From: Takakia lepidozioides
Lineage: Eukaryota; Plantae; Bryophyta
DNA: 64,000 nt
Reading direction: 5' to 3'
NCBI GenBank assembly: GCA_030704615.1
Contig: CM060733.1
Coordinates: 54,188,001-54,252,000 of the forward strand
Below the pieces are notes generated by a model. It was given only the letters and a program-made list of their open reading frames with translations. It was not told where the DNA came from and ran no database searches. Below are positions 6,722 to 64,000 of the stretch, piece by piece. Numbering within the stretch: the stretch's first letter is position 1; every line of letters begins with the position of its first letter. Position numbers and translations under genes: made by a program.

Positions 6722-6790
6722 CCAGCCATAATCAAGTTCTCTCAATCTCAACTACCAACTCTCACCTAGAGAAGAATGGCTCTGATACCA
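6722..6790 (-). repeat. Second PBS + leader + ATG beyond the 3' LTR (remnant of tandem copia copy)
   Basis: 69 bp TGGTATCAGAGCCATTCTTCTCTAGG...GATTATGGCTGG, identical bar one base to 10828-10896. Confidence 0.9.
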
Positions 6791-7097
6791 TGTTAGAATT
6801 GAGCAAGAACATGAACAAGAACTAAAGTCTTAGACTAAAGCTAAAACTAAAGCTCTCATCCCAACCATAGAAGCCACCATCATACTCTTATACTTAGACT
6901 AGTGGCTTCACCCCCGAGCTTGTATAAGAAGGTCTCTAGAAAGTCCTACTTGGTCACTTCCACTTCCACTATGGTGACCATCCACCTTCTAGCCATTCAC
7001 CTTCCAAAGGTGAGTTAAACAAGATAGTCTCTTAGACTTCTAAACCTTTGGCCTTCAAGACTCTTAGTCTTCTAGATATGTTTAATTACTTCCAACA
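6791..7097 (-). repeat. Copia 3' LTR
   Basis: 307 bp, TG...CA, adjacent PPT at 7098-7110. Confidence 0.97.
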
Positions 7098-7119
7098 CTC
7101 CCACTCAATTAAACCATAT

Positions 7120-10100: not shown

Positions 10101-10835
10101 TATCTTTGAGCTAGATTGAGGTTTCTGAAACCTCTGGGATTTCTGAGACATATGTGAAGGGAGTCTTCTGACTACTCCAGTCTTGCCTGTGAACAAAGCT
10201 CTGTCTACCTCTGTAGACGTACCTTGACATTTTCTTCTTGTTTCCTCATTGAGGAGAAGTCCTATGACAATATCAATAATTAAGTTGGTTTGTCCTGCTA
10301 GAGACACCACAAAACCATCATAGGATTTAGGTAAGGTTGCCAATAACACCACTGCGCCGTGTTCATCAGTCACGTTAGTTCCCACAGAGACTAGTTGATC
10401 TCGCAACACACAAAACAAATTCAAATGTTGTTCAACTGAGTCTGACTCGGTCATCTTCAGACCATAGAACTTTTGCGTCGCATACACTTGCGATGTGACA
10501 TCCTTCGTCTCATATATGCTTGCTAGCTTGTCCCAAACATCCTTAGCATTCTTAGCACTTATAATGAGATGCAACTGATTGTTTCTCAAGCTTGTGATGA
10601 TGCTAGCTCTTGCTTTATGATCTTTCTTATCTCATATGGCTTGGCCAACAATAGTGTCAGGTCTTGGGACTGATCCATCAACCACTCCTCATAGATCTTT
10701 GTCTAGAAGGACCATCTCCATCCTAAACTTCCAGGTTTGATAGTTAGCTTCATTGAATCGATCTTCCACTCTCATATCTAATGTACTCGTAATAGACATA
10801 GAAGGAGGATTGCTAGAAGACGACGCTCCAGCCAT
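7120..10835 (-). pseudogene. Copia gag-pol polyprotein pseudogene
   Basis: Gag (AKDVWDKLASIYE), degenerate zinc knuckle (CFYWKKLGHMIKDC), protease WYVDLGASQHM, GAG-pre-integrase LWHRRLGH, integrase [44 protein letters not shown], RNaseH tail [20 protein letters not shown]. Several TGG>TGA/TAG stops and frameshifts. A deletion at ~7360 removes the RT C-terminus and RNaseH N-terminus. Confidence 0.95.
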
Positions 10836-10896
10836 AATCAAGTTCTCTCAATCTCAACTACCAACTCTCACCTAGAGAAGAATGGCTTTGATACCA

Positions 10897-11203
10897 TGTT
10901 AGAATTGAGCAAGAACATGAACAAGAACTAAAGTCTTAGACTAAAGCTAAAACTAAAGCTCTCCTCCCAACCATAGAAGCCACCATCATACTCTTACACT
11001 TAGACTAGTGGCTTCACCCCTGAGCTTGTACAAGAAGGTCTCTAGAAAGTCCTACTTGGTCACTTCCACTTCCACTATGGTGACCATCCACTTTCTAGCC
11101 ATTCACCTTCCAAAGGTGAGTTAAACAAGATAGTCTCTTAGACTTCTAAACCTTTGGCCTTCAAGACTCTTAGTCTTCTAGATATGTTTAATTACTTCCA
11201 ACA
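10897..11203 (-). repeat. Copia 5' LTR
   Basis: 307 bp, TG...CA, adjacent PBS at 10885-10896. Confidence 0.97.
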
Positions 11204-11910: not shown

Positions 11911-14900
11911 TCAAAGAAAGGCGGTTTTAATGACCGACTTGCCAGAGTTGATGGAAAGAGCTTGAGAACCCAGCGACAATGACAGGGACAGCGAAAGCGG
12001 CGGGTCTGCATCACCTGCTGGTAAAGGGCATTGTGGAGATGTCGGAGAAAGTGTCGAGCCCATTGCTGGTCTGTCACTAGCTGCCACCTGTCTGCCATGG
12101 ATCAAGCCAGGATCTGCAAGCACCCCAGTTAAAGGAAGAGTACTACACATTGATGGTGGGCGACCTTCGAAGATCATCCGTTGCTGCTGAATCGTGTTCC
12201 CCACCTGCAATCTGGGCTGGTTTGGAGAAACTGAATTTGGAGTTGTAAAAAATCGACTTAGCTCCCCTCCACGAGCAACAGGCTCCACAGAAAAGTGATT
12301 GTGGACATCACGCCAACTCCCCCTTGAACCATGGGTGAAGCTTGGCCTCTGAGGAAGGCTTATGAGGCGTGGCAAGGGAGGCGTATTTGTATTACTTACA
12401 TAAGCAGAATTTTCAACTTTAGTTTGCTGTGCCATGCAACTGAACATTCCTGCCATGGCTGCAGCAACATGGGAATCTCCGGCAGATCTGGCAGAGGTTG
12501 TCAAATGTATTGGCGATGTTCCAGGGGAGGATGTGGATCCCCCTGACAGTCTTGGTGAGGGACTGATCATTTCTTCAACGTGAATCTCTTTCGCACTAGT
12601 GCTTCCAGTGAAGTTAGACGTATATTGGCTGATGCTCATCATGCTGGCCGGCCAAGTGAAACTGCCAGGCGGACGGCACACCTTGAAGCCCGTGTTGCTA
12701 CTTTTCTGGGCGCCTCTATGGTCATGTCGAGGTAGACACTCAATAGGCCGCTTGGGCTCTACACCTGTCACAACTGCAGCTGCACCACTTAGAACCGTGC
12801 AGTTTGTCTGGGATGTCTTCGCTATGTCTCCCGTAGAGATCTCGTGAGGTCGAGTCACCAGACATCCAGAATCACTTCTTCCCAACATCTCTTTCGTTGC
12901 AGCTACATCATTGGTCACTGGGGCGCCTTCAGTGCTGCTGCTAGTCGCGCTATTCAAACCCGTGCCGTGTCTCTTGGAAATTTCATTAGTAGAACTTGGG
13001 AGTCCGACTGATGAGCTTGCTGGTGTCCGAGGTTCGGACATGGAAGCTGGAGGCAAATTGCATGTTCCCTCGCCAACAGAGATGGCCATCAAAGGCATTT
13101 TGTCCCCAGAAACATCAACAAACTGACTCAAGGGTCCCGTGATTAGATGCTGTGAAAATCCAAGTGTATTTAGAATGTACTGGACATCACCCTGCAAAGG
13201 AACATGCAGGCCGGGCCATGTAAGCACACCACAAACTCGTAGCTCAAAGGCCATTTCGATAAACATTTACAACACAGTAATTTCAGGGAGTATGACTTCA
13301 TATTGTACGAGTTGAAAGAACGCAGCTTGAACAAATGCAATTAGTTAATACCTGACGCTTGGTCAAGGGATGAACTTTAGGCCTACATACTACTGGAGGA
13401 TTTAATAATTCCAGGGCACTATATAAGGAGATAACGCCAATTTTTTCATGCAAGCTTCGTTTTTGTTGGTACGCATTTAACGACAGGTTTGCGAGCATGC
13501 TGCGTAACAATTGAGATGTGGTCGAAAAATGTAGTTACCTGCATGACGGAAACCGCCTTGCATACATCTGCAAGCTGACCTTCCAGATCCTTCTTCCCAG
13601 ATTTCAGATGTTCTTGTCGCATTCTCCGCTCCTTTTAATGGTCAAACAGCGTCCGATGTAAAACAGAGGTTAGAACTGCTCTGAAGAAAAAATCCTACCG
13701 GAAATTGACAAGAATATCTCTCCTTTTTTCTCTTTTTGAGCAGTGGAGGACATACGTTCAACACTTATTTGCATATATTTCTACTCGCCTTCGAGTTAAA
13801 GGTAACATCTGTACCTTGGGATTTTGTTCAGCTAATCCGGTTACTCTAATCAAGATGCCTTCTGGATCAAGGGAGATTTACCTCAGAGAGCTGTTGCACT
13901 TCATTTTCGAGTCTCTGAAACCGGTCCAAAGCTGTGCTGAAACTAGATCTGTTTGGAAGATCAGAGTCAACTTCATGCAAGCACTCAGAATGCTTGGACT
14001 CAGAATGTTGAAGATGGATATTGACTCAATATTATATTGCAAGAGACATTTGCATGTGCACTGTTCATGAATCTCCAATATGACTTGGCCGAACTTCCAG
14101 CTCACCTAATTAATTATGTATACCTGTAGCCATAATTGATGCTAGCCTAAAAATTTGAACGTTGGCCCTACGTTTTGGCATCAAGCGAGCTTAGAACTAG
14201 GACATTGCTAGATCTGTATAATTAAAAGAGGCAGAGAAGCGGTCCACCTCAAACATTTCCTCTCAACAGCAAAAGATTAAGAACTGGTAGACCCTAAGCA
14301 CTTACCCAATCTTACGGTCTTGGTCACGCTGCTCTTGCAAGCTGGATAATTCCCTCCTGAAGTCAGTCACTTCCATTGCAATTATCTGGAAAGGAAATTC
14401 CACATCAGGTCGGATTGAGATACACGAACATGTTACTTGTACATCTGAAGGGAAATCCTTTCTGGACGGTTCAAATGCAAACAGAGATTTATTGCTATGT
14501 AACTTTAGACCTGTGTCAGTTCCCATTATCACCTGGATGTATGCGCCAAGTGCGAGAATATCTAAGGAAGGCTCAAAGATTTCAACAAATCTAAATTATG
14601 AAAGACATGGACATCTACGTTGTACCTCTAGCTTTTTGTTCTGCAACTCGTCATCAAATTTGCTGGGGACTTCGTTTGAAGTTGTGCCGTAGTCTTGAGA
14701 CTTCTTCTCAGCAGTGAGAGTTTCAATACCCTTCTCTCTAAATCCTTTAAGTCGGCCACACAGCAGCTTCATTTCACTAGAGGAAAACAAAACAAATTCA
14801 GTTTAGTTAGTCCCCTTCCATTTGGAGGATCCGGACGAGAGCTTAAATAGAATATTCTCTGAATCCTTGCAGGCACACCTGATCTCCTTTGTAGACTAAA

Positions 14901-17895
14901 TTTATGAAGGCGCTGAATCTTGCACTACAAATCCTAATCATTCAGTACAAACTTAATGTAATACTTCATCGAGTGACTGTAGCATCCGGGTACGAAAGCC
15001 AAGTCTTTTTATTGGATTGGTATTCCGAATTACCTCTGGAGCTTTTCTACTGTGTCCTTTAGTTGCTTCATCTCTGCGGCTTCGGAAGAAGACATTCCCC
15101 GACTGACCTCCCACGGTCGCCCTGGTAGATTGTCTCCCGGTTTCCACCCTGGAGGAGGTATCCACGAGGGATCTTCAATGCCAGCAGCTTTTCTTAACTC
15201 CATTAGACTAGAGTCTTCAAGCCAATACTCCATAGCCCCTTCAGCATTATGTCGGCGTCGGAAACGCTCACCGGTGTTTACCACTGTGTCTGTCATGTGC
15301 TTCAACAAGTGGTCAAGTAGTCCAGTGTCTCCGATATGCTTTCTAGCCTCCTCCCTCAAGGCAGGCCTTAGAATGGGCTTTCCTGGAACCGCACCGCGCT
15401 CATGCATAATGTCTATAAGTTTTAGCTGCGCAGATTTGTACCTTCAAATTCCATAGGTGCACATGATCAGCCTTCTAAATACAGACTGGTCAATCTCTAG
15501 CTGTTTCTGCTGATAATTGAGTTATAAATTATGTTTGAATCCACAAGTTTCTTTGAGGATGTTGGTTCTCATGAGCTGAGCCTATGTAGTCAATTATCAA
15601 CGTTGTGATCCAAATTTCAATGGATTGTGGACTTGTAGGTCTACCTCTCACTGGACCAGCGTCCTTGCATGTCTTTTGGAAGCTTGAGAATGTTGACAGC
15701 AGCCCGGACTGGTTGTTTGTTTGGCCTTTCTCTCAAACTCTGAGAACTTGAAGACAAGGCACGCTTAACTCCACGCGAACATGATCTTAAGCCGTATAAC
15801 TCTCCTTGAACTGGACTTGCTACTGGTGTCCATCCGCCACAGTTGGAGTGCAAGAAGTCGTATGGGACAGCGTTGTATTCCTCTTGTGGGCTACTTTGTT
15901 TCTGCTCGTCGATGTGTATAATTCTTCCGTTTTGAGGCTCCAGGTCAAGCGTATTACTATTCATGCCCAAGTCACAGCTATCATTGCTGCGACGAATACC
16001 AAACGTCACCTTCTTTCTGAAACCCCACCGAATCGGCCCTTCACTGCCCTCCCCTTCTCCTAATTCTTCATTGCCCTTGTCTTGAATGTCTCGACCTGCT
16101 CCATTGAAGCCATGCCGTCCATGAGGAAGCGTCAGCTGAGTCAAGAGTTCTGCTGCAGCTTTAACTGTTACCATAGAAATTTCACACGAATTAGCGTTCG
16201 CCTCCTCTGTCGTGGTACCACTTCGCAGGTCCAAACCCGGTTCAGGGGGTGAATTCCTCGTGCCCTTCCACACCTGGCCTTCCATTTTAGGTAGCTGCAT
16301 CATTGTTTCAATTTGTCGAAGATCTCTTGAATTCTTGTCCATGCCGGAGTTTTGAAAGTTGTTGCAAAGATCTTGAGTTACCTGCTCCATTCTTTCCTCA
16401 ACATGAGAACCATTCTGGCCATTGGTATCAACTTGAGACAACGGATCGTAGATGCCATCAGACTTTGATGTGGATGAACCTGCAGCCATACATTTTCCAC
16501 GAATCTGATCTCTATAACTCTTGGCAGGTCCATCGTCAAGAGCCTGTACATCTTTAAAGTTTGCCTCAGAGCTCTGGGTGGAATCTGGTCCAATGAGCCA
16601 AAACGTTTTGAGATGTGCCTGATGCAGATATTCAGTGCATGAGATTGGTCGTACCAAGAGTCTTTCTGCCATTTTTGGAGTCATCACAAACTTGCCATCC
16701 AGTTCAGGCTTCGAGCCCATCAGAGGTTCCACATAACCCAGCTGTAGTTTGTACCTCGTGAGTTTCCGTGGTATGTTCTGCACATCCATGGCATAATCCG
16801 GGGATTTTCCGAAAAAATTCTGCAGCGAATTTGTGCTCGGAAAATTGACTGTGACATGTAGCCTTGTCTTTTCCGAAATCTAGAACCACCAAACACATAT
16901 TTCAGTAATCTTGAGAAAGCTCTAGATACGTGATTAAGCGTTACATCTCATTATCTCCAGGGATCGTCTAAACAATGAATAGATCTAAGTTTTCCAATTA
17001 ATATGACACAGAAATTAGGAGGGGCACACGCACTTGCAGTTGCTGCATTGGCATCAGAGACTCACCTGCTGGATAACGAAGATACTAAAGATACGAGTTC
17101 AGTAGCTTGCGATACTAAATAAATGAAGCAAACTGGTCAAGTTGCATAAGAGAACATTCAGAGATATATATACATATGACCAGAAAAAGGTCATATGGCT
17201 AATCAAGGCGAATCTTGGAGGCTCAGAACAAATGACAACAGGCGCAAAGGCAGCCGTTTGCATATAGCTCGCTCGGTCTCAAAGGATGGGGATTTCTGCT
17301 CGAGCAACCAGCAGAAACCAGATAGCTAGAGTATCTTAGACATGACTTACCACCACAGCACGAACACTCTGGAGATCCGAGGGAGCTTCAGGTGGCAGAT
17401 TCTTCAGATCTATCTCATAGGTGCTTCCCACACTGATAGCTGCAGATCGAACATTAGTTGAGGAATGAGTAAGTGTTAGGCAAAATTCGTTCAGGCATTC
17501 ATGATGTCATGACCATTTTAAGCTCAAGTCAAAACTGTCGAACACATATATGGCAGCCTTGCAACATGGTCCAATCTGAGCTTGTGTTAAGACCTCAATT
17601 CAAAAAGTGAGATTCTCTTCATCACTGAAAACTGAAGGCCCGTGGAAGGAGGAGTACCTGTCATATCATTGGCGTGGTTCATTTCAGTTGTTACGACCTG
17701 AAGTTGATCTGCTTGTAATGGAGAGACTCCTGTACTAGAGTTGCTGCGTATCTTCGTTACTTTGTCTAGTGATTTTCTCGACGAAGACGCGGAACTGAGC
17801 TGCTGATGCTTCTTAGGATTTTGCCCGGCGTCGGTGGCGTTAGTGCCTACAAGATCTTTTGCAGGGTCCTTATTGCAAATGTAAGAGCTCATCAT
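11911..17895 (-). CDS. SWI1: SWI1/DYAD/AMEIOTIC1-family meiotic protein, ~1213 aa, 9 coding exons
   Basis: GT-AG exons 17895-17658, 17439-17351, 16879-15645, 15441-15034, 14776-14626, 14385-14306, 13948-13882, 13631-13539 and 13191-11911 sum to 3642 nt in frame. Hallmark motifs: GSTYEID..LPP, ISEKT...FPS..SL..FF, PELD.KFVM, WG.RKKV, GRWSSERYKSA...LREEARKHIGDTGLLDHLLKHM...RFRRRHNAEGAMEYWLE...WIPPPGWKPGD, then a coiled coil. Confidence 0.93.
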
Positions 17896-27518: not shown

Positions 27519-28245
27519 ATGTTCTTAAACCATGACATCTCACTTTCAATGCATTTACATTGTGCAACATACACAAATTATCTGCGCACTTTTTGTCTTA
27601 CAGGATATAATAGATAATAACAAACATGCAAAGTCATTCACTTTAGTAGTGGGTATTCAAAAGTACCCTAGCACGGCCAGAATCAATTACTGGTGATCAG
27701 GGCAGTCCATTGGAGAATTTGGAGGAACACGACGGCATGCCAGCATGCGACCTCGAAAGCGGGAGCAATTGATGGTAATTTAAGCTTGTGTCCTCAGGGA
27801 TGACGACAGGAGACAAGTTCTTGTCCAGAACCCCAAAAATGAAGTCAATGTCAAAACGTATCAAGAAGTTGAATGCAGTAGGCAAAGAAATAAAGGACTT
27901 GAGCACTCCGCTATCATCAAGTATCCACTTGAGAGTATTTCAGATATGGAACCTCAAAACTTTTATTGCATTCATAAAAATTTTATGTAAAGAATGAACT
28001 GTATCTTTGCCAAACTTTCCCCTTATCCAAGCGTTGTAGAATTTTTTGAAGATACTCCAGATTCAATATCTTTTTGTGGACAGACAAGTTTTTCCCCGGA
28101 AGGTGTGTACATTGTCATATGTTCTTGCAACAAGTGCATGTAGTGCCGAACTGTCTCCATGGCGTTCATAGTTTGAGCGCTGTAAACCTAGTGTTGTGTG
28201 CAGTAGGAGCACTAGATGTGACAATGTCTCTTGTGAGTGTAGCAT

Positions 28246-28875
28246 CACAAGAGGTGATAGTACCATTAATATCTCTCCGTCTGCTGATGTCATACTCACA
28301 AGAGGTGAAGGGTTTGGCAAAGGGTCAAACTCGATATGTTTGTCCGAGCAGATCCTTTGACCCCAAGTTTACACTTATAGGGAAATTGCAAAAAAGACAC
28401 AAGCTCATGCATGGCGATGACATACCAGCCGTAGGTGGTTTTTGCACAAGAGGTGATGTCATTCAGATATCTTCACCTGCTGATGTCATATTCACAAGAA
28501 TTGATGTCATTCATACATCTCTATCTGCACCCAAAAAAAAACCATTCAACTTCTGTATGTTTCCATGCTCGTGAATCTTGTGGCCCACACATCTTTCCCA
28601 GGGAGCTCCGATGTTCAGCGTGTCATGTCATAAGCTTTTCCAATGAGGGGCTTTGGTAGTACTTGTGCCTTCAATCATGGGATGATCGGAAAGAGAATAG
28701 GTAAAGATATATGAATGGCATCATCTCTTGTGAGTATGACATCAGCAGGTAGAGATATATGAATGGTGTCACCTCTTGTACAAAGACTGCTGGTGTCTTT
28801 TTTGTATCTCTTCAAATGTGAAGGTAAACTTGGGGTTGCAAGATCCTCTTAGACAAACGCATCGAGCTTGAACTT
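28246..28875. repeat. Inverted duplication built from ~48-bp units
   Basis: 28320-28530 (+) and 28700-28875 (-) are homologous; unit CACAAGAGGTGAT..CATTCA.ATATCT..ACCTGCTGATGTCATA.T occurs several times in both orientations. Confidence 0.8.
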
Positions 28876-29100
28876 TCACCGGTCCGTTTTTCCAATACAA
28901 AAACTTGATATACGCTCGGACAAGCAATGAGGACATCTTTTGTCGCCTTAATAATCCATCAGCTCCAGGGCGTTATCTCGCTGCTTTCGCTTCTTGAGCT
29001 ATCACCATGTAAATATGGCCCTCAGAGAATGATGCATTGAGCTTTGCCAATAAGTTGTATCCACCTTCATGTTCTTGGGCACATAAATACGGCCTCTAGA
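28530..29100 (-). pseudogene. CACTA/EnSpm TnpD (Transposase_21) relic
   Basis: 28530-28695 gives FPIIP*L..YYQSPSLEKLMT*HAEHRSSLGKMCGPQDSRAWKHTEVEWF; upstream RCPHCLSER (CPxC motif) at ~28940. Confidence 0.75.
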
Positions 29101-34209: not shown

Positions 34210-36591
34210 CATGATGCTGGCGTTAGGAAGGGAGTGCATTAATCTGCAATCTCGCGGGGTTTACGACTTACACAAGAGGGTCCAGTACTTTGGGAATCTG
34301 GGACGAATAGTTCCAAAATTCTTGCGTGTCAGCTGATATTGCAACAATATGGTATCCTTGTGCTCCATGACATGAATTCCAGTAAGGTTTACTGGAATAG
34401 TAGCAAAGCTGGACCACAAGATCACAGTCCTGTGAGTTGGGTCCTCAAGGTAAATCCAGAGAATGGAAATTTGAGTATCAGTGACATTGCGAACTCAAGC
34501 AATATCCTGTGGACAAACTCGGCAAACATAATTCACAGCCAAGTGACTCCCGTCGCGGCCCGGAGCCAAGTGAAGTTGACGGCCTCTAGTATAGATTGTG
34601 GTTGGGGTGGTCGGAGGAGCTTCTGTTATGGCCGTGGCTGCCTTAGGGTTGCACTTCTATGCACGAAAAAGTAAGCCTATTTCTATCCCCAGAATCCATC
34701 ATAGATTTTGTATTTGGCCTACGAGTCGCGTGCTGCAAATATTTGCATGGCGAGGTTCCTGCACATGATGATTGTATATGTAGTGATGCTGAAGTTTGTG
34801 CTTAATTATGAATCAGAATTTCTTGACCCAGCCGACAAGGCATTCCAGGAGTGACTGGGGGCCAACGGTGGGAATTCGCAAGTACTAACGCAGGAGAAGA
34901 TCAAGCTGACAACAACTACTCTAACCTGATAGGACGCGGGGGCTTTGGGGATGTGTTTTACGGCAAGTTGCCAGACCTGCAAGAGGTGGCGCCCAAAGTT
35001 TTGTCAGGGAACTCCCATCAAAGCAAGTATGAGTTCTACAATGAGGTCTGAGTTGGCTTTTTTCAACGAAACATTGCAAGTCTAATCACTTTTGTTCAAT
35101 GATCAGAGTAAGGTCCTTCTAGTTTAAAAGCCTCACAGCCGTACATTACCAGGCAGTGAGTGAATTATGTTAGCTTTCTAACATGGCTCGATGGTGTGAT
35201 GGGTGTGCAGATTGAGCTGCTGTCCAAGGTACATCGTTAGTACTTGGTTGCTCTTTTAGGGTACAGCTGCACATGCAAGCGTCAGATATTGGTCTGCGAA
35301 TACATATGGGTGGAGGAGACCTTCGACACCGACTGCAAGGTTCATGCCAACATCTATCTTACAACTGCTGGATTGTGTTCTCTAAGACAACTTATGCCCC
35401 CAGACGAATTTAATGGATTCCATTGAAATCATATTGATGACTCATTACACCTTGGTCTGCACGAAAGGGTGGTGCAGGGAATCCCTTAAGCCGGCGACAG
35501 AGGACAAGTATGATTCTTCAAGTTGCAGAAGGTATCTTGGAGTTTGAATCCTGTAACCACTTATGAAATAGTACACGTGAGGTGTTATCATTTTAGCAAC
35601 TTATTCTTGCTCAGGCATGACCAGTGATCATGTGCAAGTTTCCAATGATCTTCGTTCGTACGTTTAATCATTGACCTGCTCCTGGCTTTGGTGCAGGGCT
35701 TGAGTACCAGCTTCATGACAAATGATCGCCCCCAATCATCCATCGTGACGTCAAGAGCACCAACATTCTAGTCACAAACAAGTTGGTTGCCAAGGTGGCG
35801 GATTTCAGGCTGTCTAGACTGAAAGCCATTGGGCAGGAAGACGCCACCCATATCACGACAGTGCTGAAAGGAACTCCGGGATATCTCGATCCAGAGTAAG
35901 ATCAATCCCTTTCCACATCTCGAAGGCACCATCATGCTAATGAATTTCAGTGCCTTAATGTTCTTGTTTTCTACATAGCATCAAGTCTGTGCAACATTTA
36001 CAAACAGCTTGCAGATGAATGATGCTGATTTTTTCACATGGTGTTTTTTCAAATGGGTTGCAGGTATCACGAAACAGGGATGCTGACAGAGAAGAGTGAT
36101 GTGTACGCGTTTGGAATTGTGCTGATGGAAATCCTGACAGGACGTACTACCCATTATAGGAGAACATCATATATATATCTATATATGTATATATAGCTCA
36201 AAGGGTATGATATGCGAGAGCTGAACAATTGCATTGAACTGATTAATTGTTATGCATGGGCATCTGTAAGTAAGTGATGCAGTTTTGCTGGTTTTTTAGT
36301 TACAGGAGTACAACATCTACATCTTGGGATGGGGTCGCTTAATGAGTATGGTGGTGTTGTAATGCAGGTTGCTAACGCTTGGAGACTGGAATACCAGATC
36401 CAAGTATGGGATTGGATTATGATACAGAAGAACTTGAGAACCTGGTGGAGCTGGTGCTGTGGTACTTGAGGAGAATCAGTGTAGAGAGGCCACTTATGCG
36501 TCAGATTTTGCGAAGGCTCCATGATCTAGGGTTGGCCTCATCTGATCCGTCTCAACCTCAAATCGACGTGGGTGAGGAAAGTCAAATGACA
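34210..36591 (+). pseudogene. Bulb-type (B/G) lectin receptor-like kinase pseudogene, copy 1 (5'-truncated)
   Basis: B-lectin VLWESGT..CQLILQQYGILVL..VYWNS..ENGNLSI..ILWTNS, a TM remnant, and kinase [46 protein letters not shown]. Stops and frameshifts; the 3' end is cut by a SINE. Confidence 0.88.
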
Positions 36592-36675
36592 ATACCACAC
36601 CCGTCAGTAGCAAGATTTGACCCCAGAATCATCTGGGTGGCACTCAGTGCACTTAACCAAGCTATGGACTGGTGG
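36592..36675 (-). mobile_element. SINE head fragment (tRNA-derived)
   Basis: GTAGCAAGATTTGACCCCAGAATCATCTGGGTGGCACTCAGTGCAC is nearly identical to the copies at 40.5, 53.0 and 62.0 kb. Confidence 0.85.
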
Positions 36676-37260
36676 TGACCCCTTCATAGTGAGAGGAGAA
36701 AACTGGGGCTTCGCGTTGCTCCGCACTACTAGCTACGAATTCTGAGAATTACGTTCAATTTGCACAGAAAGGGCGGGTCATCCCCAGCGTTCCATACAGA
36801 CATCCCATATTTCTTTGGAAGAAGAATGGCGGAGTGTTGCCGAAGCTATCATGTCACGTATTTGCTTTTCATTGTCTGATGCAGCTACCCCTATCTGTGC
36901 CCAAGAAGTAAGGGGGTGGAGAATTTCCAGGATGTGAAGAAAGAAACCAAGGAAAGCACTTCCCTGTCTTCCACCCTCATATGTTTTTGAGCAGGGAGCC
37001 ACTTCACACTCTCTACTACACATGTTGGAGATTGCTATCTATGAAATGATGCAATGAATGCGTAAAGCTGGAGATTTGCAAAACATGGTTTTTTTAGCAG
37101 GTAATGTGCTACTTGCATATCCTCTAGACGGAGAGAATGTACTCCCGAGACATTGTTACCTTAAGACTTGGCCACAGACATGAACAGTTCGGGTAAGAAA
37201 AGAGATGAAATGAAATTTCCCTCTTGGATTCAGAGGCATACAAACACTCTTTTATAGAAA

Positions 37261-37390
37261 CTAGCAACACTCCTGCAAGATTGAGACGGAAGTGTTGGAA
37301 TTTGCATGAATGCCTTAAACGTGCAGAGCCCTTTTCAGTCGTCCTGCCTTACACAGCATCTTCACATCCCTGGTAGTGCCAGATGAGTTC
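37261..37390 (-). pseudogene. PPR protein N-terminal fragment
   Basis: RDVKMLCKAGRLKRALHV*GIHANSNTSVSILQECC*, typical of the first motif of PLS-class PPR proteins. Confidence 0.7.
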
Positions 37391-38113
37391 TGTTTACCCC
37401 CTCTCTTTGTTTCTCTTTCGAGTGCAGTGGCGATACCCCTGCAGCCAGTCTGATTGTCCAACAAGTGACTGTGCCTGATTCAACCTTGTCATCCCGAGTC
37501 ATGAACTATTTTTTACAAACCATACACTCCAACATAGATAATGTCTCAAAGCTCCTTGAATATAGCCTATCTTCATTAGGACAGGCTTCCTGGTACATAG
37601 CAATGGAGTTACTAAACTACAGTAGTCATCTTTAAGACTGTACAATCTCTATCTGTTCAGGTTTGACCCTTGGATGATCATCCATCTTTCCCCTTTTCCA
37701 GAGCTCCCAAGCTTGCACATGCATTGCATCAAATGTTTATTACACACACAACATTAAGGTCAAGATTAATCAGAAATGCAGTCTGTCGCACCTAGCATTT
37801 GACTCCATCTCTTATCTGATGGGTGTCGCAACTAGCACATCTTCCCACAATACTTCTGGACTACTATATTTCCCACAGGTTCATCTGCCTCCAAATTAAA
37901 TTGCCAGGATATTTAACCAAAGACTGTTTATTGAGTTTAAATTGATATAAGACAACCAACAAAGGCTGGCTGCAAGTTACATAAATCTAATATCAGGCTG
38001 GTAATCTTGATTCCCACTTTTTTGGCCGACACCAACAAATACACATTGGACACATATGGAATTGATAGACGAGACCATCACCCTGCCAGTACAGTGTTCA
38101 GAGAGACAGAGAC

Positions 38114-39648
38114 CTGAGCCAAGATGATAGGGCCCCCTTGCCAAGCAAAAAAATGTCGTTCCTTCATCAGGTCCACAATAATTTTCACAAAACCCTCCAT
38201 TGCGTCCTGTAGCCAGCTAAGACAAGCAAGCGGCTGCTGAGGTATACGAACTGCCTAACTTGCAATGCCTTCCCCTCTGCTGAAGGGGTCAGCATGTTTA
38301 CAAGCTAGCTCTGATTCGCACTGCAAATGTGCAGCATTTAGAGCTGATGTAAAGAAAATCTGTGTTCACAACAGACCAAGCAAGAGTACCAACTTTGTTT
38401 TGATACGGCATCTCATTCCATGTGAGAAACACTGGGCAGGAGATCACATCATTGACCTTAAGCAGCTGCCTCCTAAGACTGAGATACACACTCACAGTAT
38501 TTTCATAAGGTGTGTGCACAAAGCTCTCTCATCCACTCTCATTTGAGAAACCGCTGCGTTCCTAGAGTGCATTAAACAACCCTGGTAAGTCTACTTTTAT
38601 TTCTCAAGGCTCAACTTAACAAGGGACGTTTGCATTGTACTACCCATCACCTTCAATTGCAGGCAGATCCAGCTGGAATCAAGTCCTGCTTCTCTCTTTA
38701 TTAGTACCCCTCTCAATCTACAGACTACTGATTTGAAAAGAGTGCGACCAGGCAAGTAATTCTTATCCTTTTTCTCAGTACCACAAAATAATCCATGTGG
38801 AGGCATCACATCATGCAAGCCTTCATATATATGAGAAGCACGTGCTTGAGCCTGCTGGCTGATACTAGGCGCAAATAAGCCTCCAAATCCTTTCAGACTC
38901 AAACTCACCTTGAAGGGTTGATTGTCAGTGCGGAACACAATTCCGGGAACATCACGCAACCACACTGGAAAGCCCCTGCACCCAACCATTTCATTCATGC
39001 CACGTCTTCATTTCCTAACCATGCAACTTGCAACCAAATTACCTCATGCAGAAACAACAAAACAACTGTGATACATAAGGAAACAGCCAAGTTTGAGACA
39101 CGGCAGCCCAGAGGAGAGAGGGACAGAAGGATGGAGAAAAACTTGCAACCAAATAACCTCATGCAGAAACAACAAAACAACTGTGCTACAAAAGGAAACA
39201 GCCAAGTTTGAGACACGGCAGCCCAGAGGAGAGAGGGACAGAAGGATGGAGAAAAGGGAAACCACAGTATGGCACAAAGGACATATCTAAGAAATACAAT
39301 AGGATGAGAAGAAGTATAAAGACAGTATAAATTTAGGCATTGTCTACCCAAAATTCCAATCTGCACATGCATAAGGGCCGATTCGCAAATTGAGATAGAG
39401 GCCGGCTTCCTCCACCAGCTTCACAAACTTGGGCAGATCGTATCTTCCCGCAAAGTTATACTGTGCACCCACCCACATGAAGGCGAACATGAAAGCCACA
39501 CTTGGTCCAACCTCTCACCACCCAAACCCATTTTCACTCAATTGCTGCAGGTAAACAAGCAATCACGAGAAAGAGGGAAGAACCAGACCATGCGCTGCTG
39601 AGGCTCATGTCCGCTCCAGAATACATAAGTTTGTATCACGTCTGCTCG
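38114..39648 (-). pseudogene. BGAL: GH35 beta-galactosidase gene fragment (end of exon 2 plus three exons, introns retained)
   Basis: ADVIQTYVFWSGHEP (to 39589); exons 39460-39348 [34 protein letters not shown], 38975-38909 GFPVWLRDVPGIVFRTDNQPFK and 38206-38114 ..WQGGPIILAQ. GT-AG borders are intact; the IENEYG exon and the rest of the gene were not found. Confidence 0.93.
39025..39256 (+). repeat. Tandem duplication (~116 bp x2) in BGAL-fragment intron
   Basis: ACTTGCAACCAAAT.ACCTCATGCAGAAAC...GAAGGATGGAGAAAA repeated head-to-tail with few differences. Confidence 0.95.
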
Positions 39649-40140
39649 CTTCACACCTTCGCACATCATTTGCTCATAGGTCTCCAAAGCCTCCATCCTG
39701 CGCCCTTGCTATGCATATCCTGCAATCATCGCACTCCACGACACCACATCTCGTTCAGCCATACTGTCGAACACTCCCTTCATACATGTCCACGAGGGTA
39801 TTGTTCAGAATGACATTGGTACAATTGCAGCTCTGACAATGTCACCATGCACCTCTTCGCCCTTTTCCAGAGCTGACAGGCTTGCACACGCATTGCAAAT
39901 GCACACAAACGTGTTGTGGTCGGGCGTCACCCCTTCCCCCATCATTTGATCATAGGTCTCCAAGGCCTCCATACCACGCCCCTGCTGTGCATACCCTACA
40001 AGCATCGTGTTCGACGTTATCAAAGATCGTTGAGGCATTCTGTTGTCTCTGTTATCTGTGTTTTTCGAAACTTTCCTGTTGCCACATTGGCAGATGTCAA
40101 AATCACTCCAAAACCACCATAGATCCACCAACGAGCTAAC
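39649..40140 (-). pseudogene. PLS-class PPR fragment
   Basis: NTMLVGYAQQGRGMEALETYDQMMGEGVTPDHNTFVCICNACASLSALEKGEEVH..NTLVDMY../GVFDSMAERDVVSWSAMIAGYA*QG; frameshifts and a stop. Confidence 0.92.
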
Positions 40141-40649
40141 TTCCAGACTTCAACATGAAAATTTAGGACGACTCTCATGCGGTGGACTCATGATCTGCAA
40201 ATGTCTCCCTCCGCGCTCAAGCACCCGGCGGGCGTTTTCGGGCATTTCGGGCAGGTTCCAAGGAAATTGACGACGACGATGACGTGTCTACGAAACGTGG
40301 CGACGATGACATGGTGATGATGACGAGACACTATGGCACCCTATTGCTGCTCTAGGCTAAACTAGCTTCTGACCTTCCTAGCTAGAATAACCTCTTTCAC
40401 AATAATAACCTCTGTCATCGTGAAGGCTTTCCGATGCGACACCTGCGACACCTGCGCAAGGGGGGAAGGAGAGTACCACAACCATCAAGTAGCAGGATTT
40501 GACCCCAGAATCATCTGGGTGGCACGGTGCACTTACCAACTGAGCTACTGTCTACCGGTTTTATTTGGAGTTCTTGGATTTATTGCACGGGCGTACCACA
40601 TAGGTAACGAAATTCCTTGTCGCATAAGTAGCGACCTGCACGAATGGTG

Positions 40650-45105: not shown

Positions 45106-48100
45106 ATGACTTTGATTTCAAGACGGTCAACTCTTGCTCTACTTCTCCTGATCGTTATGTCATGCCAGGTAATTCCAAGAGGACAGGCAATGAGTGTTTT
45201 GGTCGCCACCAAACCCTATTTCGTAGTGAACCCCAAAGAATACCTTTACGTTACGTATCTGACAAGTACTACTTAGTGATGCAGCCAAACTGCCATCTTG
45301 TTCTTTACAATTCCTCAGGGCAGCATCTGCTGGAGACAAATAGAGATCCTAGCTCCCATGGCTATACAGTTGGTCAACAAAATTGCAGCCTCGTCATGCA
45401 AGATGATGGAAACCTTGTAATCTACAATTTTACAAGAGAACAATATGACTAGGAGAACACAACTTGGGTTAACACAGTGTGGAATCATCCCTGGGATTTT
45501 TGTAGTATGGGCACAAAATGTTTGGAACTCCGAATATAACCATTCATTTCTACTTTTGGGAGGCGATCATAGCATTCTCGAGTTCTATTATAGCAATGGC
45601 ACACGCTTTCAAGACTTTACTTTCTACAGTGCACCCATAAATTCAAGTAGTATGCTGAACTATCCATCTTTTAGCCCAAATTCCACGGATTACAAGGCAT
45701 GGCAACCAGATGCATCTTTGGATGCATTTCCATACATGCCAGCAGGATACTTCCTTTCTGCGGGCAACAGATTGATAACGAGGACCTTAGCATTTGTGCT
45801 AGAGCTGAATGCAACTGACTGTAACCGACTGCAACCTGCAATCTAAACAAGTAATGTATGGTGATAGGGTTATCTGGCAATCTAATACGAAGTCTAGTTC
45901 GGAAAATCGATCTTGTCGGCTTGAACTGCTGCAGAATGGGCGCCCCATCACCCATCGCTCCTGCGAGCTCCCCAGCAAGCACTCTAGCAAAGTCGCACGG
46001 GCCAATTGTGTGGATTGTTGTGGGTGTGCTGGGTGGAGCATTTGTGTTGGCCATGACAGCATTTGGGTTGTATTTTTACGCAGGAGAAAGTAAGCATCTC
46101 TCTTACCAAAATTCAATGTCTTTCTCTTGCCCAATCTCACTAGTGAGTCTCTCTGAATGCTTGCCCATGATTGCAGTGGGGACTAGATCCACATGATGAT
46201 GATTGCACTGATATTGCATGTTTTTTTCCATTAGCCTTTCTTGAGCCTGCCGACAAGGCGTTCCAAGAGCGACAAAATTCTCGAGAATTAATGGAGGCTA
46301 AGGTCAAACAAACAACAAGCAACTACGCTAAATTGATAGGACACGGGGGCTCCGGGGATGTGTTCTACGGCAAGTTGTCGGACGGTCAAGAAGTGGCTGC
46401 CAAAGTTTTGTCCAAGAACTCCCATCAAAGCAAGCACGAGTTCTTCAACGAGGTTATTGCCCAATGTCTGATATCAGTCATCGGTTTTGCTTCATTATTT
46501 GACCAATGTGGACTCCTCAGTTTTGAAATCTTAAAATCCCTAATGGATTTGTACTCAGATTTGCATTCTAAGATGGTAGCTAGCCGGGGCCATGGGTGTG
46601 CAGGTTGAGTTGTTGTCCAAGGTGTATCACAAGCACCTGGTTGTTCTTCTAGGGTACAGCTGCACCCGCAAGCACCAAATATTGATATACGAGTACATGA
46701 GTGGAGGAGACCTTTGACACCGACTGCAGGGTGCGTCCAAAACTCTCTCGCAAGTTGCCCGTGGATCATATTTTCCAACACTGATCATATCAAAACCCTT
46801 TAACCCACAGACAGTTAATTAAGATGATCAACTTCATGATTTAACGTAATTGATGGCTGATCTACGGTACCTTGTTGATTGATCTGCAGGAAAGGGTGGT
46901 GTCGAGAATCACTTGAGCTGGCGACAAAGGAAAAAATTACAAATATCATCCTCCAAGTTGCATAGGGTAAGTTAGGGCTGAATCTTACACCTAACTGTGA
47001 GTGAACTGTCATTGTACAAGTTTCCCAATGTTCTAATATGTCAATGACATCTCTTGACCTAGATGTGGCTTTGGTGCAGGGCTAGAGTATTTGCATGATA
47101 AATGCTCCCCTCCAATTATCCATCGCGACGTCAAGAGCGACAACATTCTACTCTCAAACAAGTTGGACGCCAAGGTGGCAGATTTCGGGTTGTCAAAACT
47201 GAAAACCGGTGGGCAGGAAGATGCCACCCATATCACAACCAAGATGAAAGGCACTCTAGGATATCTTGATCCAGAGTACAACTGTTTATTTCCCACATGA
47301 TCGCCAAGACATAATCTTGTTTAGTTCAGGACCTTCTCTAAGCCTTGTATGCTGACTGAGTAAGACATTGGTGCTTGTGGTGGCTTTCATGTTTGGCTGC
47401 AATTACAACGTCAACATCTTAATTAAACTGCAATGATACATATAGGTTTGCATACAGTAAAGTAAATGGGTCATAATATGGAATTAATTGATGCTAATAG
47501 GGTTAGGCGCCTGATATTTTTCAAATGAGTTGCAGGTATCGTCAAATAGGGATGCTTACAGAGAAGAGTGATGTGTACGCGTTCGGTACAGTGATGATGG
47601 AAATCCTGACATGACTACCTGTTATAGGAAAAAATCATGAATACATTGCTCAAAGGGTAAGACAAGCGTTAGCTGAACAATTGCATTGAACTGCTGAAGT
47701 GTGGTGCATTGGCATCTGTAAAGTGGTGGCACAGTTTGGGTGGTTCTTTTACGCCGTGCAGGGTTACAATCTTTAAGTTATAACTGGAATGAAGGTGGCT
47801 TATAATGAGCAATGTATGAGGTGTTGCTATGCACTGTGCAGGTTGGTGACGCTTGGAGACAAGATCAGTTGACGATTTGGAAGATCCAAATATGGGATTG
47901 CTTTTAATAGAGAAGAACTTGTTAACCTGGTGGAGGTGGCGCTTTGGTGCGTGAGGAGCAGTAGTGCAGAGAGGCCATTTATGCGTCAGGTTGTGTGAAG
48001 GCTCCATGAGCTAGGGTTGGCCTTGTCAGAGCCGTCTCAACCTGAAATTAATGTCGGTGAGGAAAGTGAGATCAATGTCACCGCACTCACCTCAACTCGT

Positions 48101-50330: not shown

Positions 50331-52141
50331 GCGGGTGATAGGTATCGTGCCTATTCTTCTTCTTGGCTCTGGGCGTGTGTACACATTGGTCACTTCTTGA
50401 TATAAAAAAAACTCATGATATGTTAAATATTGAAAGGCCTACTGCTGATATAAATGTGTACAAGGATGCTTCTCATTGATTTTATTCCTCAAAGTATTCC
50501 TCAAGTTCCTCAAAGTATTGATACCTAGGTTTTCCTCACAAATATGGATATGGTATTGGTATCATGTACCAGATTTTCAACCACCTATCAGACTGGTAGG
50601 GTATCATCCACAATATTAGGAAGCAGATACCAGGCCAATACGGGTATATGCTAGGTAGTGGCCTGAGGTGATACCAGACTGGTATGATATTTCATATCAG
50701 TATACATGCCAGTATTGATACCAGTTTCTTATCGGTAAACGAGACCAACACTGGTTCATACCATTTTCTACGTCAATCAATCTTCCGCTCGTGGCGAAAA
50801 AAAAAAGAATAATAATAAAATTGTGGAAAATCACGATTATCAACGATTGTGCTTTCTCCCCTCTCATGATGGGTGCATGATATTCTCCGGAACTTTTCTG
50901 ATCATTCTGGTCTTTTTCCGCGGTAATCGGCCTTTGGATCTATATCCTCGGGTATAGGCCCTCTTTCTTTATAACAACACCATGCGCTCATGCTTAGCAA
51001 GCGTAAGCCTAGGCTCACGCTTAACGGGTGAAGTGTGAGCCTAGCTCATACGCTCACTGGGCTAGGCTCACACCGGAGCTATGCTGGATGATGATCTCAT
51101 CTATCCAGGAAATTAATGTACATTTGTTCTGACGATTAAAAATTAATCTCCAATTTTTTTTTTTTGGGGGATAAACAGGGGGGAATTTGAATCTCACTGG
51201 CGTTCAACATCGCTGTTTGACAATGCACGTAAAAGGCATAAATGTGCGACGAGGCATGCATGTATGACAACCCTCACGATTTGGATGCATGTATCATGGT
51301 GGTGCACTTCATGTATTTCATGCATGAAGGGAGGGGAGCCGGACGTGGGAGGAAGTAGAGGCCTGGTTGTGGCGACCGCGGGCCGCGGCGTTGCTGCCAA
51401 GGGGGGTGGAGCAGGGGGTGAGGGCCAGGCCACGTATGCACACCCGCCCAGGCCGCATTCAACTTCTAGGCCTTTTCTATTACTTGGCAATGCATAGGGT
51501 GGTTCCACATCTCTTGTAATTGCATAATGTATAATGTCTCTTTAAAAATATGGTACTAGAATATATGCTGCCATAAAAGATAGGGTTAAAATATTTTATA
51601 ATAAAGTTAATCAGGGCTGCAATCCCTAAGAAAAAAAAAAGAGGGGATTATTCCATACTGGTATGTCCATTTTGGCATACCAAACTGGTCTTGGTACGCC
51701 TAATGGACCTCTAAGGGCCATGTAGATCCAATGGCGTGGGTAGGGTACATGGCTGGTATGAATATGTAGAGCAGTTCCATTCGGGCCCTATACATTCTAG
51801 AGTGGTCCAGGAATTACTGTGGCCCGGGAATTAGAGGGGAGGCTTATGTAGTAAGGGAATGTGTATTAAGGAACGAGATCAAGGGGTCCAAAAAAAGAAG
51901 GGAGGAACGCGAGATGTATTAAATTGGCCAAATTTAGATAGGGACTCTTGTAGGGCTGACATGTGTCCAAGGCCTTCTAGAAGGTCCCAGGGTCGGAAGG
52001 TCCCACCGCCATGAGAGGGTTGGGAGGCCCCCTTTTACTACCTACTAACTTACTACTTCCTAAATTAGTAAGCAGTGGCCCCCCAAAAGAAACAGCAAAC
52101 ATGAATCTATTAATTAATAGAAACCACAATACCCACCATGA

Positions 52142-52390
52142 ACACGCATTGACTATAATGCACATCAGTTGGTAACTCAGCCGGTAGGTGCACAGTGTGT
52201 TGCCATGTGGTTCGGGGCTCAAACCAGCTGCCCTTCCTGGTGTGCGGATCGTTCGTGACCAGTTGGTCTATTGGTGACCTTCCCACCTGTGTGCCTAAGA
52301 CAGGGGATTAATTTTTCCCCCTCCTTAAGGGCCTGAGTTGTGAGCAGTCGCTCCCAGGTTTCTTTTTGAAAAAGAAAAAGAAAAAGAAAG
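52142..52390 (+). mobile_element. tRNA-derived SINE (subfamily 2)
   Basis: Head TAACTCAGCCGG...TTGCCAT...GGGGCTCAAACC; 3' AGGGCCTGA..GAGCAGTCGCTCCCAGG plus A-rich tail. Confidence 0.75.
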
Positions 52391-52882: not shown

Positions 52883-53116
52883 TTTTTTTTTTTTTTAAGG
52901 GAAAAACATCTGGGAGCAACAGCTCACCGTCAAATCTGGCCCCTTAATAGTGCGAGGAGAAAATAACCTCTTTCACAGTAACTGCGCCTTGGAGGCGTAG
53001 AATTGGAACACCGCCCAGGGAAGGGGGGAGAAGAGTATACCACACACGTCGATTTGACCCCACAATTATCTGGGTGGTACTCAGTGCACTAAACGACTGA
53101 GCTACTGACTGTTGGA
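52883..53116 (-). mobile_element. tRNA-derived SINE, near full length, poly(A) tail
   Basis: A-box TAGCTCAGTCG, B-box GGGGTCAAATCG; colinear with 61895-62112. Confidence 0.9.
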
Positions 53117-61340: not shown

Positions 61341-61395
61341 GATGAAGACTTTCAGCTCATCTATATAGCATTTAAGCATGTATCTCACTATAATT

Positions 61396-61456
61396 AAGGG
61401 GCCTGAATTTTGGGCAGTCGCTCCCGGGTATTGTTTTTTCAAAAAAAAGAAAAACA
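61396..61456 (+). mobile_element. Isolated SINE 3' end
   Basis: AAGGGGCCTGA...GCAGTCGCTCCCGGG plus A tail, matching 52327-52375. Confidence 0.65.
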
Positions 61457-61855
61457 AGTGAGGTCTTATCATTCTGGGCTTTTGCAGGTTCTATTTTTTT
61501 TTCCCTCTCTCTTATTAATAAAGCTCTTTGCTCTTCCCCAACCAAAAGAAAAGAGCTTCAAAGTTTTTCATAATTAATATTTATCCCTTATCAAGATTGA
61601 GGCTAATTTCCCTTTTGCCCCACCACATGGGCAGCCCCTCTTGTGTCCCGACCCCCACCCTCAAGGCAAAGGGCCGTGACACAATTATACCAGTTATCAA
61701 TGTACTTATAAATCAATATCTTATACTATACTTATATATGTACAGTCAAACCTGGATAAATGTTATGCTCCAAGAGTAGGAACTCTATAACAATTAGGCA
61801 GTTATATGAAATAACAGTAAAACAGGTCGAAATTTCATAACCTAACAATTAGAAA

Positions 61856-61860
<5 letters not shown>

Positions 61861-61897
<37 letters not shown>

Positions 61898-62112
61898 GAA
61901 ACACCTGGGAGCAACGGCTCACGAATCAGGCCCCTTGATAGAGAGAGGAGAAAATAACCTCTCAGTAACCTCGCCGTAAGGCTTTCTGATGCGACACCGC
62001 GCAGAGAAAGGGGAGAAGAGTGTACCACACCCATCAAGTAGCAGGATTTGACCCCAGGGTCATCCGGGTGGCACTCAGTGCACTTTACCAACTGAGCTAC
62101 TAACTGTTGGTT
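61861..62112 (-). mobile_element. Full-length tRNA-derived SINE with (TA)n tail
   Basis: Minus strand: A-box TAGCTCAGTTGG, TGCCAC anticodon-loop-like segment, B-box GGGGTCAAATCC, ~140-bp body, (TA)17. A 17-bp near-duplicate TAACA(G/T)TAAAACAGGTC sits at 61812 and 62113. Confidence 0.9.
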
Positions 62113-62834
62113 TAACATTAAAACAGGTCCTTCAAATGTAAGATAACATTTAGAGAGAGGGCAGAAGAGCTGAAGGTGTCATCGTGCTTAACCTACTATT
62201 CTTTGTTCCCATAAACATTCGCAGTACCCTACCAGGAGGTTCAGGAGGTTCTCGAGTTCCCTGGAGGCCCCCAAACCCTAACATGCGACGTTCTCCTGGC
62301 CATTTCAATATTGAAATGCCCATCTCAATAGTTCAAATGGCCTCTCATTTTTGAATAATTGGGAGTTTATGTCGCGCGTATGGGACATGGCGCGCACGGC
62401 CGCACGGACACGGGGTCGCCCTCCCCCCCCCCCCCACCCCCACCTGCCAGCCGCGCAGCGTGGTCGGCAGCCCCGCAGCCCTGCCCGCACGCCGCCCAGC
62501 CCGCCCGCCCTCGCCGCTGGGTCCGCCCGCCATCGGGTCCCCAGTGGGTCTGCCCAAGCTCGGTCTGCCCGCTAGTGGGTCTGCTGGGTCTGCCGCCAAG
62601 TAGCCCGACGGCGGCAGACCCAAAAGCACCCCGGATGACGTGGCGCCCATCTCACTGTGATGCCGCACTGCTATGTGTGCATCGTAGCTTGCGATGCTAC
62701 ATTTGGAACTAACCATCACAAGGTCTACCGTGGACCCTCTCCACAGGCTTCTGCTAGCATGATAGCATACTACAATGGTCTCCCACTCTTGTGGTGCATT
62801 GCTTATTCGTCCTCAATCCCGATAGACCTAACTA

Positions 62835-63042
62835 TTGTAGACCCTGTCCCAGTACACCCTGTTCCAATAGACCTTCCACTGCACTCTGTTTTAGGGCAAA
62901 CCCTTTTGCGTGTTCACCCTGTTACAGTAGACCCTGTGCATGTTCACCCAGTTGCAGTACACCCTGTGCGTGTTCACCCAGTTGCAGTAGACCCTGTGCG
63001 TTTTCACCCTGTTGCAGTAGACCCTGTGCTAGTACACCCTGT
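62835..63042 (+). repeat. 15/30-bp minisatellite in MULE intron 1
   Basis: GTAGACCCTGTGC.TGTTCACCC.GTTGCA units. Confidence 0.9.
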
Positions 63043-63296
63043 TAAAATAGGGCCTGTCGGTACGACACTGGTCTGCTAATTACGAATTGTCATTTCATGC
63101 AGTTCCCCTTGTACACGTTGATGGTGTTCGACCAATGGTTGAACGGAATTCCAGTTGCATACATATTGTCAGCACGCAAGCGAACATCAGACCTTTTCCC
63201 GTGGATGTTAGCATTGCGTGATGCCCTCCTTAAGGAAAAACCCACCTGGCGGCCAAATGCCTTCATTGTTGACGTGAAGCAGAAATCAATGCAACC

Positions 63297-63530
63297 CGGT
63301 ATGCCACATCTCAATCTGCCCTATGGTATGCTCTATGGTCCACTACACGGTCTGCTATATGGTCTGCCTTGTCTGGTCTCACGCTTGTGGCAGTACTAAA
63401 TCCGGTATGCCACATCTCATTCTGCCCTATGGTCTGCCCTGTGGTCTGCCATATGGTCTCAATCTGCCCTATGGTCTTATGGTCCGCTCCAGGGTCTGCT
63501 ATATAGTTTGCCCTATTTGGTCTGCCCTGT
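63297..63530 (+). repeat. 12-bp (TATGGTCTGCCC-like) minisatellite with duplicated donor site in MULE intron 2
   Basis: CGGTATGCCACATCTCA at 63297 and 63403; many GGTCTGCC units. Confidence 0.8.
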
Positions 63531-64000
63531 TTGGTCTCATGCTTGTGGCGGTGCTGAATACGAATGCCCGGTCCAGGCACTTTTGACTTTGTGGCCGCAT
63601 GCAGGTCTGTTTTCACAGGAGTATGCATTTTCCTCTGCCTTTGGCATATACGGAAGGCCTGGGTCAAGCAATCATGCCAGAAAATCAGTGATCCGGGAAC
63701 AGCCTCGAAATTGTTGGCAAATATGGGCGACCTTATATATTGCAGAGGTGGACCGCAGAAAGAAGACGAAGCTGTGAAATGGGTTAAGAAAAAATTGAAG
63801 GCAATGAAAAAGAAATATCCTGCTGGTCAGTTGTTCCTCCACTACATTCATGCGTACTGGGTTCCCAAAATCGCTATGTGGTGTACTGCTACCCGCAAGA
63901 TTCCACATGCAAGCCAAGATACTAATGCAAGCATTGAGGCATACCACGGAAACTTAAAGGCGAGACTTAATATGGGCAAAGGCAAAATGTCGGGTCGAAG

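Follow-up and report, generated by a model that had tools for sequence, protein, structure and literature searches.

The analysed window, a 64-kb stretch of Takakia lepidozioides DNA, contains at 36703-40387 (minus strand) a segment of 3685 bp that separates two parts of a tRNA-like SINE and carries pieces of host genes, which raises the question of whether it arrived as a mobile element and, if so, what kind of enzyme moved it. The position of the segment, the anatomy of its ends and its cargo together support the non-autonomous, gene-capturing rolling-circle element proposed in an initial annotation, and probably make it an HLE2 (Helitron2/Helentron-group) transposon, presumably moved in trans by a RepHel protein encoded elsewhere in the genome.

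Insertion site

Two intact copies of the SINE (~215 bp, with a tRNA-like head) are present in the window, at 52896-53115 and 61893-62110. The flanks of the segment (36676-36702 and 40388-40553), once joined, align to both copies with no indel across the junction (37/41 of the first columns identical to the 52.9-kb copy), as expected from the empty site that the initial annotation had read from the same two copies; the 3685-bp insert and both end sequences quoted there are also present as claimed. As the flanks rejoin to intact SINEs in this way, 36703-40387 is a genuine insertion that postdates the SINE copy receiving it, and the empty site defines the element’s ends and target exactly.

The target SINE, in the same orientation as the insert, retains its 5′ part (40388-40553, minus strand, identified by similarity to the intact copies) and the last 27 bp of its 3′ part (36676-36702, minus strand; 24/27 matching the 52.9-kb copy). 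This 27-bp left half abuts a second, 3′-truncated SINE head (36585-36675, minus strand, identified by similarity to the SINE copies), which ends where similarity to a kinase paralogue (47.5-48.1 kb) begins. The earlier description of a clean insertion into a SINE thus holds for the junction and not for the SINE, which is incomplete; its left-side truncation leaves the element boundaries unaffected. The kinase-like gene itself is duplicated and decayed (34581-36582 and 46000-48067, 70–83% identical), and its first copy stops exactly where the truncated SINE head starts. Short SINE 3′-end fragments were also seen at 52325-52388 and 61394-61457, the second inverted with respect to a full copy ~470 bp away.

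On the element strand the empty site reads A followed by four T, while the insert is bordered by two T at one end and four at the other, and the two surplus T’s can be assigned to the 5′ end of the element, to its 3′ end, or one to each. The target is therefore a T run compatible with A|T, T|T, TT|TT or a TT duplication, and the exact cut is ambiguous. Insertion without target duplication at A|T had been proposed; the insertion stands, and A|T as a fixed site was rejected since a T4 run with two extra T’s allows several cuts. The same ambiguity of terminal T’s has been described for non-autonomous Helentrons (PMC4067079), and a T4 run of this kind, HINE-like in its two extra T’s, corresponds to the T-rich, T|T target of HLE2 elements, which is used without duplication.

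These junctions also bear on whether the segment is a transposon at all. Templated repair filler in a SINE break, or a Pack element moved by cut-and-paste that duplicated TT, would account for the multi-source content (such fillers do occur at breaks), for the truncation of the left SINE half 27 bp from the insert and for the surplus T’s, a TT duplication being formally possible at this site, but is very improbable given that zero bases were lost at the junction, that improbable signals are correctly placed at both ends, and that the segment lacks true terminal inverted repeats such as those of CACTA, MULE or hAT elements. Pack-MULE and Pack-CACTA were each rejected, the segment having neither true terminal inverted repeats nor a 3-bp or 8-11-bp target duplication.

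Element ends

The ends carry an asymmetric inverted repeat of 13 bp with two mismatches (11 bp with one), which is close to a perfect palindrome. The 5′ arm (40375-40387, minus strand; core CTAGCTAG) starts at the first base of the element (offset 0), and the 3′ arm (36727-36739, minus strand) ends 24 nt before the last; only 59/40000 random end pairs from the window (0.15%) equalled the 11/13 match between the arms. A 7-bp asymmetric subterminal repeat had been recognised initially, and its extension to a nearly palindromic 13 bp with 11 matches changes the length and not the presence of the repeat.

Downstream of the 3′ arm are two GNA mini-hairpins, GCGGAGC and GCGAAGC, with an AAC spacer (36708-36724, minus strand), followed by CCCAG. 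The window contains ten GCGNAGC heptamers, counting both strands; a twin arrangement appeared anywhere in 3/300 simulated windows and in 0/100 shuffles. As single strands, GCGNAGC heptamers fold into mini-hairpins of very high stability (Tm 73 and 76 °C for the GCGGAGC/GCGAAGC pair; PMC13037366). Such mini-hairpins go unscored by standard folding, and because only GNA loops form them, the twin forms on the element strand only. GCAACGC, suggested previously as the core of a 3′ hairpin, was rejected, its place being taken by the GCGGAGC/GCGAAGC pair, while the CCAG end given there was confirmed; a single base change separates it from CTAG. At the other end a possible hairpin with a 6-bp stem, using the 5′ arm, and a 12-nt loop (40362-40385, minus strand) is included in the MFE structure with a z of -0.7, not above shuffles. 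The first ~350 bp of the element, CpG-rich non-coding DNA (~40040-40387), include an ATC/GTC triplet-rich stretch (40263-40332, minus strand; 12 triplets vs 1.9 expected).

In the published Helitron2 layout, short asymmetric inverted repeats are placed with the 5′ arm 0-2 bp from one end and the 3′ arm 20-30 bp from the other, upstream of a hairpin, and the target is T-rich (PMC3627910, PMC4067079). The insert has a repeat within the 8-15 bp range of HLE2 with its 5′ arm at offset 0, a 3′ arm 24 nt from the end and two mini-hairpins after it, so that its ends, first described as non-canonical, match the layout known for Helitron2/Helentron elements. Against HLE2, the perfect matches in the inverted repeat are shorter than the 12-15 bp usual for Helentrons.

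The same ends could be read as those of a canonical Helitron (HLE1) with worn termini, in which TC marks the start, CTAG has mutated to CCAG and the mini-hairpins serve as terminator. This reading, which we consider unlikely, draws on the closeness of CCAG to CTAG directly after the hairpins, on the possible A|T reading of the insertion site and on heavy gene capture, which is typical of HLE1. However, HLE1 starts with TC directly after a host A, and here TC is preceded by T in all readings compatible with the empty site; the 3′ end is CCAG and not CTRR; and no 16-20 nt palindrome lies ~11 nt from the 3′ end, mini-hairpins being found instead. An asymmetric inverted repeat is present, and HLE1 has none, while the combination of 5′-TT, 3′-CTAG and A|T is itself known from proto-Helentron, which is grouped with HLE2.

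Orientation alone does not dismiss a Replitron reading, since the repeat is palindromic and its two arms can also be taken as short direct copies of TAGCTAG. Replitrons carry short direct repeats in or close to their termini, mostly lack target duplications and are present in non-seed plants (PMC10288648), and a decayed one lies in the same window (431-1849). In Replitrons as described, the element extends 0-11 nt past the repeat, whereas the insert runs on for 26 nt, placing the 7-bp direct reading 26 nt from the 3′ end and outside the ~11 bp expected. The Replitron at 431-1849 differs from the insert in its repeats and shows no similarity to it, the ends of the two not being shared, and the Replitron paper (PMC10288648) nowhere uses the term ‘gene capture’. 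A non-autonomous Replitron derivative is thus very unlikely, and a Replitron-type enzyme, offered at first as an option for mobilisation, appears disfavoured.

Captured host-gene fragments

Six-frame translation of the element yielded no transposase-like frame, as already noted in the initial annotation, and an Rfam search of the element stretch gave no match. The cargo begins, after the CpG-rich 5′ segment, with a decayed fragment of a PLS-type PPR gene (39648-40040, minus strand; Pfam PPR_2, E 1.5e-9; two motifs 78% alike), damaged by one frameshift, by the loss of roughly 9 codons and by one stop. Its assignment agrees with the PLS-PPR piece first named there, and the protein search returned no close homologue for it. 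Fused to it in frame is the 3′ part of a GH35 beta-galactosidase (BGAL) exon with a GT donor (39589-39647, minus strand; PF01301, E 0.005; residues 51-67 of the plant enzyme 3w5f). Three further BGAL exons with intact AG/GT signals follow on the same strand: 113 nt at 39348-39460 (3w5f residues 70-107, E 3e-16), 67 nt at 38909-38975 (residues 107-130, E 5e-7) and 93 nt at 38114-38206 (residues 131-160, E 8e-5), the last followed by a truncated intron. When searched singly, rather than as a joined model, the four exons are collinear with residues 51-160 of 3w5f and their introns are kept, bearing out the earlier recognition of intron-containing BGAL exons. Self-comparison revealed a 115-bp tandem duplication (97%) in one of these introns (39025-39255).

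A short second PPR scrap (37685-37728, minus strand), 86% like 39854-39897 across 44 bp, lies towards the 3′ end. Just before it (37780-37840) a 14-bp motif occurs twice around a short palindrome, possibly a junction remnant. At 37264-37368 (minus strand) is a probable first PPR motif of another gene, containing a stop; the match fits the PPR N-terminus suggested before, but is a weak call (Pfam PPR_1, E 0.048). A putative exon (36781-36894, minus strand), in which a short open frame follows a possible splice acceptor, had been listed as an unidentified terminal exon of host origin. Acceptor and frame are both present, but no credible homologue was found among 1.84 billion protein representatives (two HMMER matches represent weak scores summed over repeat proteins) or in the other collections searched, and this frame may be the element’s own 3′ sequence.

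Of the three to four host-gene pieces on the element strand originally counted, those identified as PPR and GH35 are therefore all on the minus strand, the terminal exon drops out as unsupported and the 44-bp PPR scrap is added. The common orientation of three or four pieces is suggestive only. The pieces join mid-exon, those derived from PPR genes are broken, and the window gives no sign of functional cargo.

Classification and proposed mechanism

With these features the element falls cleanly into a known kind, the Helitron2/Helentron group, and does not represent a new one. Palindromic repeats are known in mite HINEs, hairpins with GAA loops occur in Fusarium HLE2 ends, and HLE2 elements are known in land plants. 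No RepHel partner was found in the 64-kb window, and no second copy of the element was found elsewhere in the window or in metagenome, viral or prokaryote collections. Scanning for the end pattern gave no match in viral and prokaryote contigs, and 0 strict and 64 relaxed matches in metagenomes, none resembling the insert ends or the SINE. Two metagenome contigs (L002, 3655-3682; L010, 2805-2832) carry TAGCTAG and an AAC-separated GCGNAGC pair spaced as in the insert, without an upstream repeat partner, and are unrelated or chance occurrences.

By extension from the biochemistry of Helraiser, an HLE1 element (PMC4778049), an HUH enzyme would nick the 5′ end of the element and a helicase would displace one strand. 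On the strand so displaced, the 3′ arm of the inverted repeat together with the mini-hairpin pair would provide the stop signal, and the copy would then be joined into a T run without duplication. Retention of introns in the cargo implies capture at the DNA level. Cargo was presumably copied from genomic DNA into the interior of the element in several separate events, with template switching or gap repair as the likeliest route, and would have decayed afterwards. No internal copy of either end was found inside the element and fragments join mid-exon, both of which favour these two routes over simple read-through beyond a former 3′ end.

A broader proposal is that the insert is one member of an HLE2 family, spread through the genome, that terminates in a GNA mini-hairpin pair, captures and shuffles host exons at the scale of maize Helitrons and constitutes a main, hitherto unreported route of PPR amplification in a PPR-rich non-seed plant, sometimes giving transcribed chimeras (PPR::beta-galactosidase); we regard this as tentative and rather doubtful. 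The interest of the locus possibly lies in such a family, with its mini-hairpin terminator and potential role in PPR amplification, beyond what a single window establishes. Gene capture has been reported as rare for Helentrons and HINEs (PMC4067079). The large PPR expansions in non-seed plants have been attributed mainly to retroposition, and Takakia has been described as having dispersed duplication but few features of retroposition (PMC13386178). The number of PPR genes in Takakia lepidozioides is about 2,000. A PPR-carrying HLE2 family, if real, would be a testable alternative source of these expansions; among the papers searched, none joined Helitron, moss, PPR, expansion and RNA editing. 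Ends like these would escape tools relying on TC/CTRR termini or on longer perfect repeats.

Other features of the window

The decayed Replitron-like element at 431-1849 (minus strand) retains Rep-motif remnants and 12-bp terminal direct repeats, and part of it (1715-1839) is 71% like 51783-51924. A copia element occupies 6722-11203, with 376-bp LTRs that are 98% identical; the best matches of its RT in the protein collection are only about 45-56% identical, and the RT used as bait yielded no usable sister genome. Ten window ORFs looked for in the protein collection were absent from it. Long intact ORFs of 451 and 382 aa (11911-13266 and 15641-16789, minus strand) have no Pfam match and are probably exons of one host gene. 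A nested inverted-repeat cluster at 28228-28876 (arms of 89, 53 and 47 bp) is possibly foldback or MITE-like, and tandem repeats of 30 bp and 12-14 bp extend over open frames at 62812-63562.

Comparison with known systems

The closest layout is that of Helitron2 (Bao and Jurka 2013, PMC3627910; including Helitron-5_SMo from Selaginella), which shares an 8-15 bp asymmetric inverted repeat with a terminal 5′ arm, a hairpin preceded by the 3′ arm at 20-30 bp from the end, a 5′ T and a T-rich target; the Helitron2 5′ arm can form a hairpin, as that of the insert possibly does. The Takakia element differs in having two 7-nt GNA mini-hairpins as its 3′ hairpin, several host-gene fragments and no coding capacity. 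HINE/DINE-1 elements (Thomas et al. 2014, PMC4067079) resemble it in their palindromic subterminal repeats, ambiguous terminal T’s, lack of target modification and simple-repeat stretch near the 5′ end, but their 3′ arm lies 38-60 nt from the end, compared with 24 nt here, and gene fragments were rare in that survey, whereas this element is mostly cargo.

If the boundary of the initial annotation is taken, the 5′ TT, CTAG-like 3′ end and A|T site are those of proto-Helentron-Pi (PMC4067079; moved to HLE2 in PMC11417382), the A|TT...CYAG|T reading of the element matching proto-Helentron; that oomycete element is autonomous and has another repeat layout, and its Takakia counterpart ends in CCAG. 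HelenSM92 of Sphagnum (HELIANO, PMC11417382), compared by description and not by end sequence, is likewise an HLE2 element of a non-seed plant with short repeats and a TT target, but is autonomous and has a GIY-YIG domain.

Gene-capturing HLE1 Helitrons of maize and bats, including Helraiser (PMC4778049), similarly carry intron-retaining fragments of several genes, make no target duplication and use a hairpin terminator; unlike them, the element has no A|TC start or CTRR end and does have an inverted repeat. Replitrons (Craig 2023, PMC10288648) share HUH-type insertion without duplication and a short repeat at both ends, from which the element departs in the placement of its repeat and in a 3′ extension with hairpins, as it also does from the Replitron of its own window.
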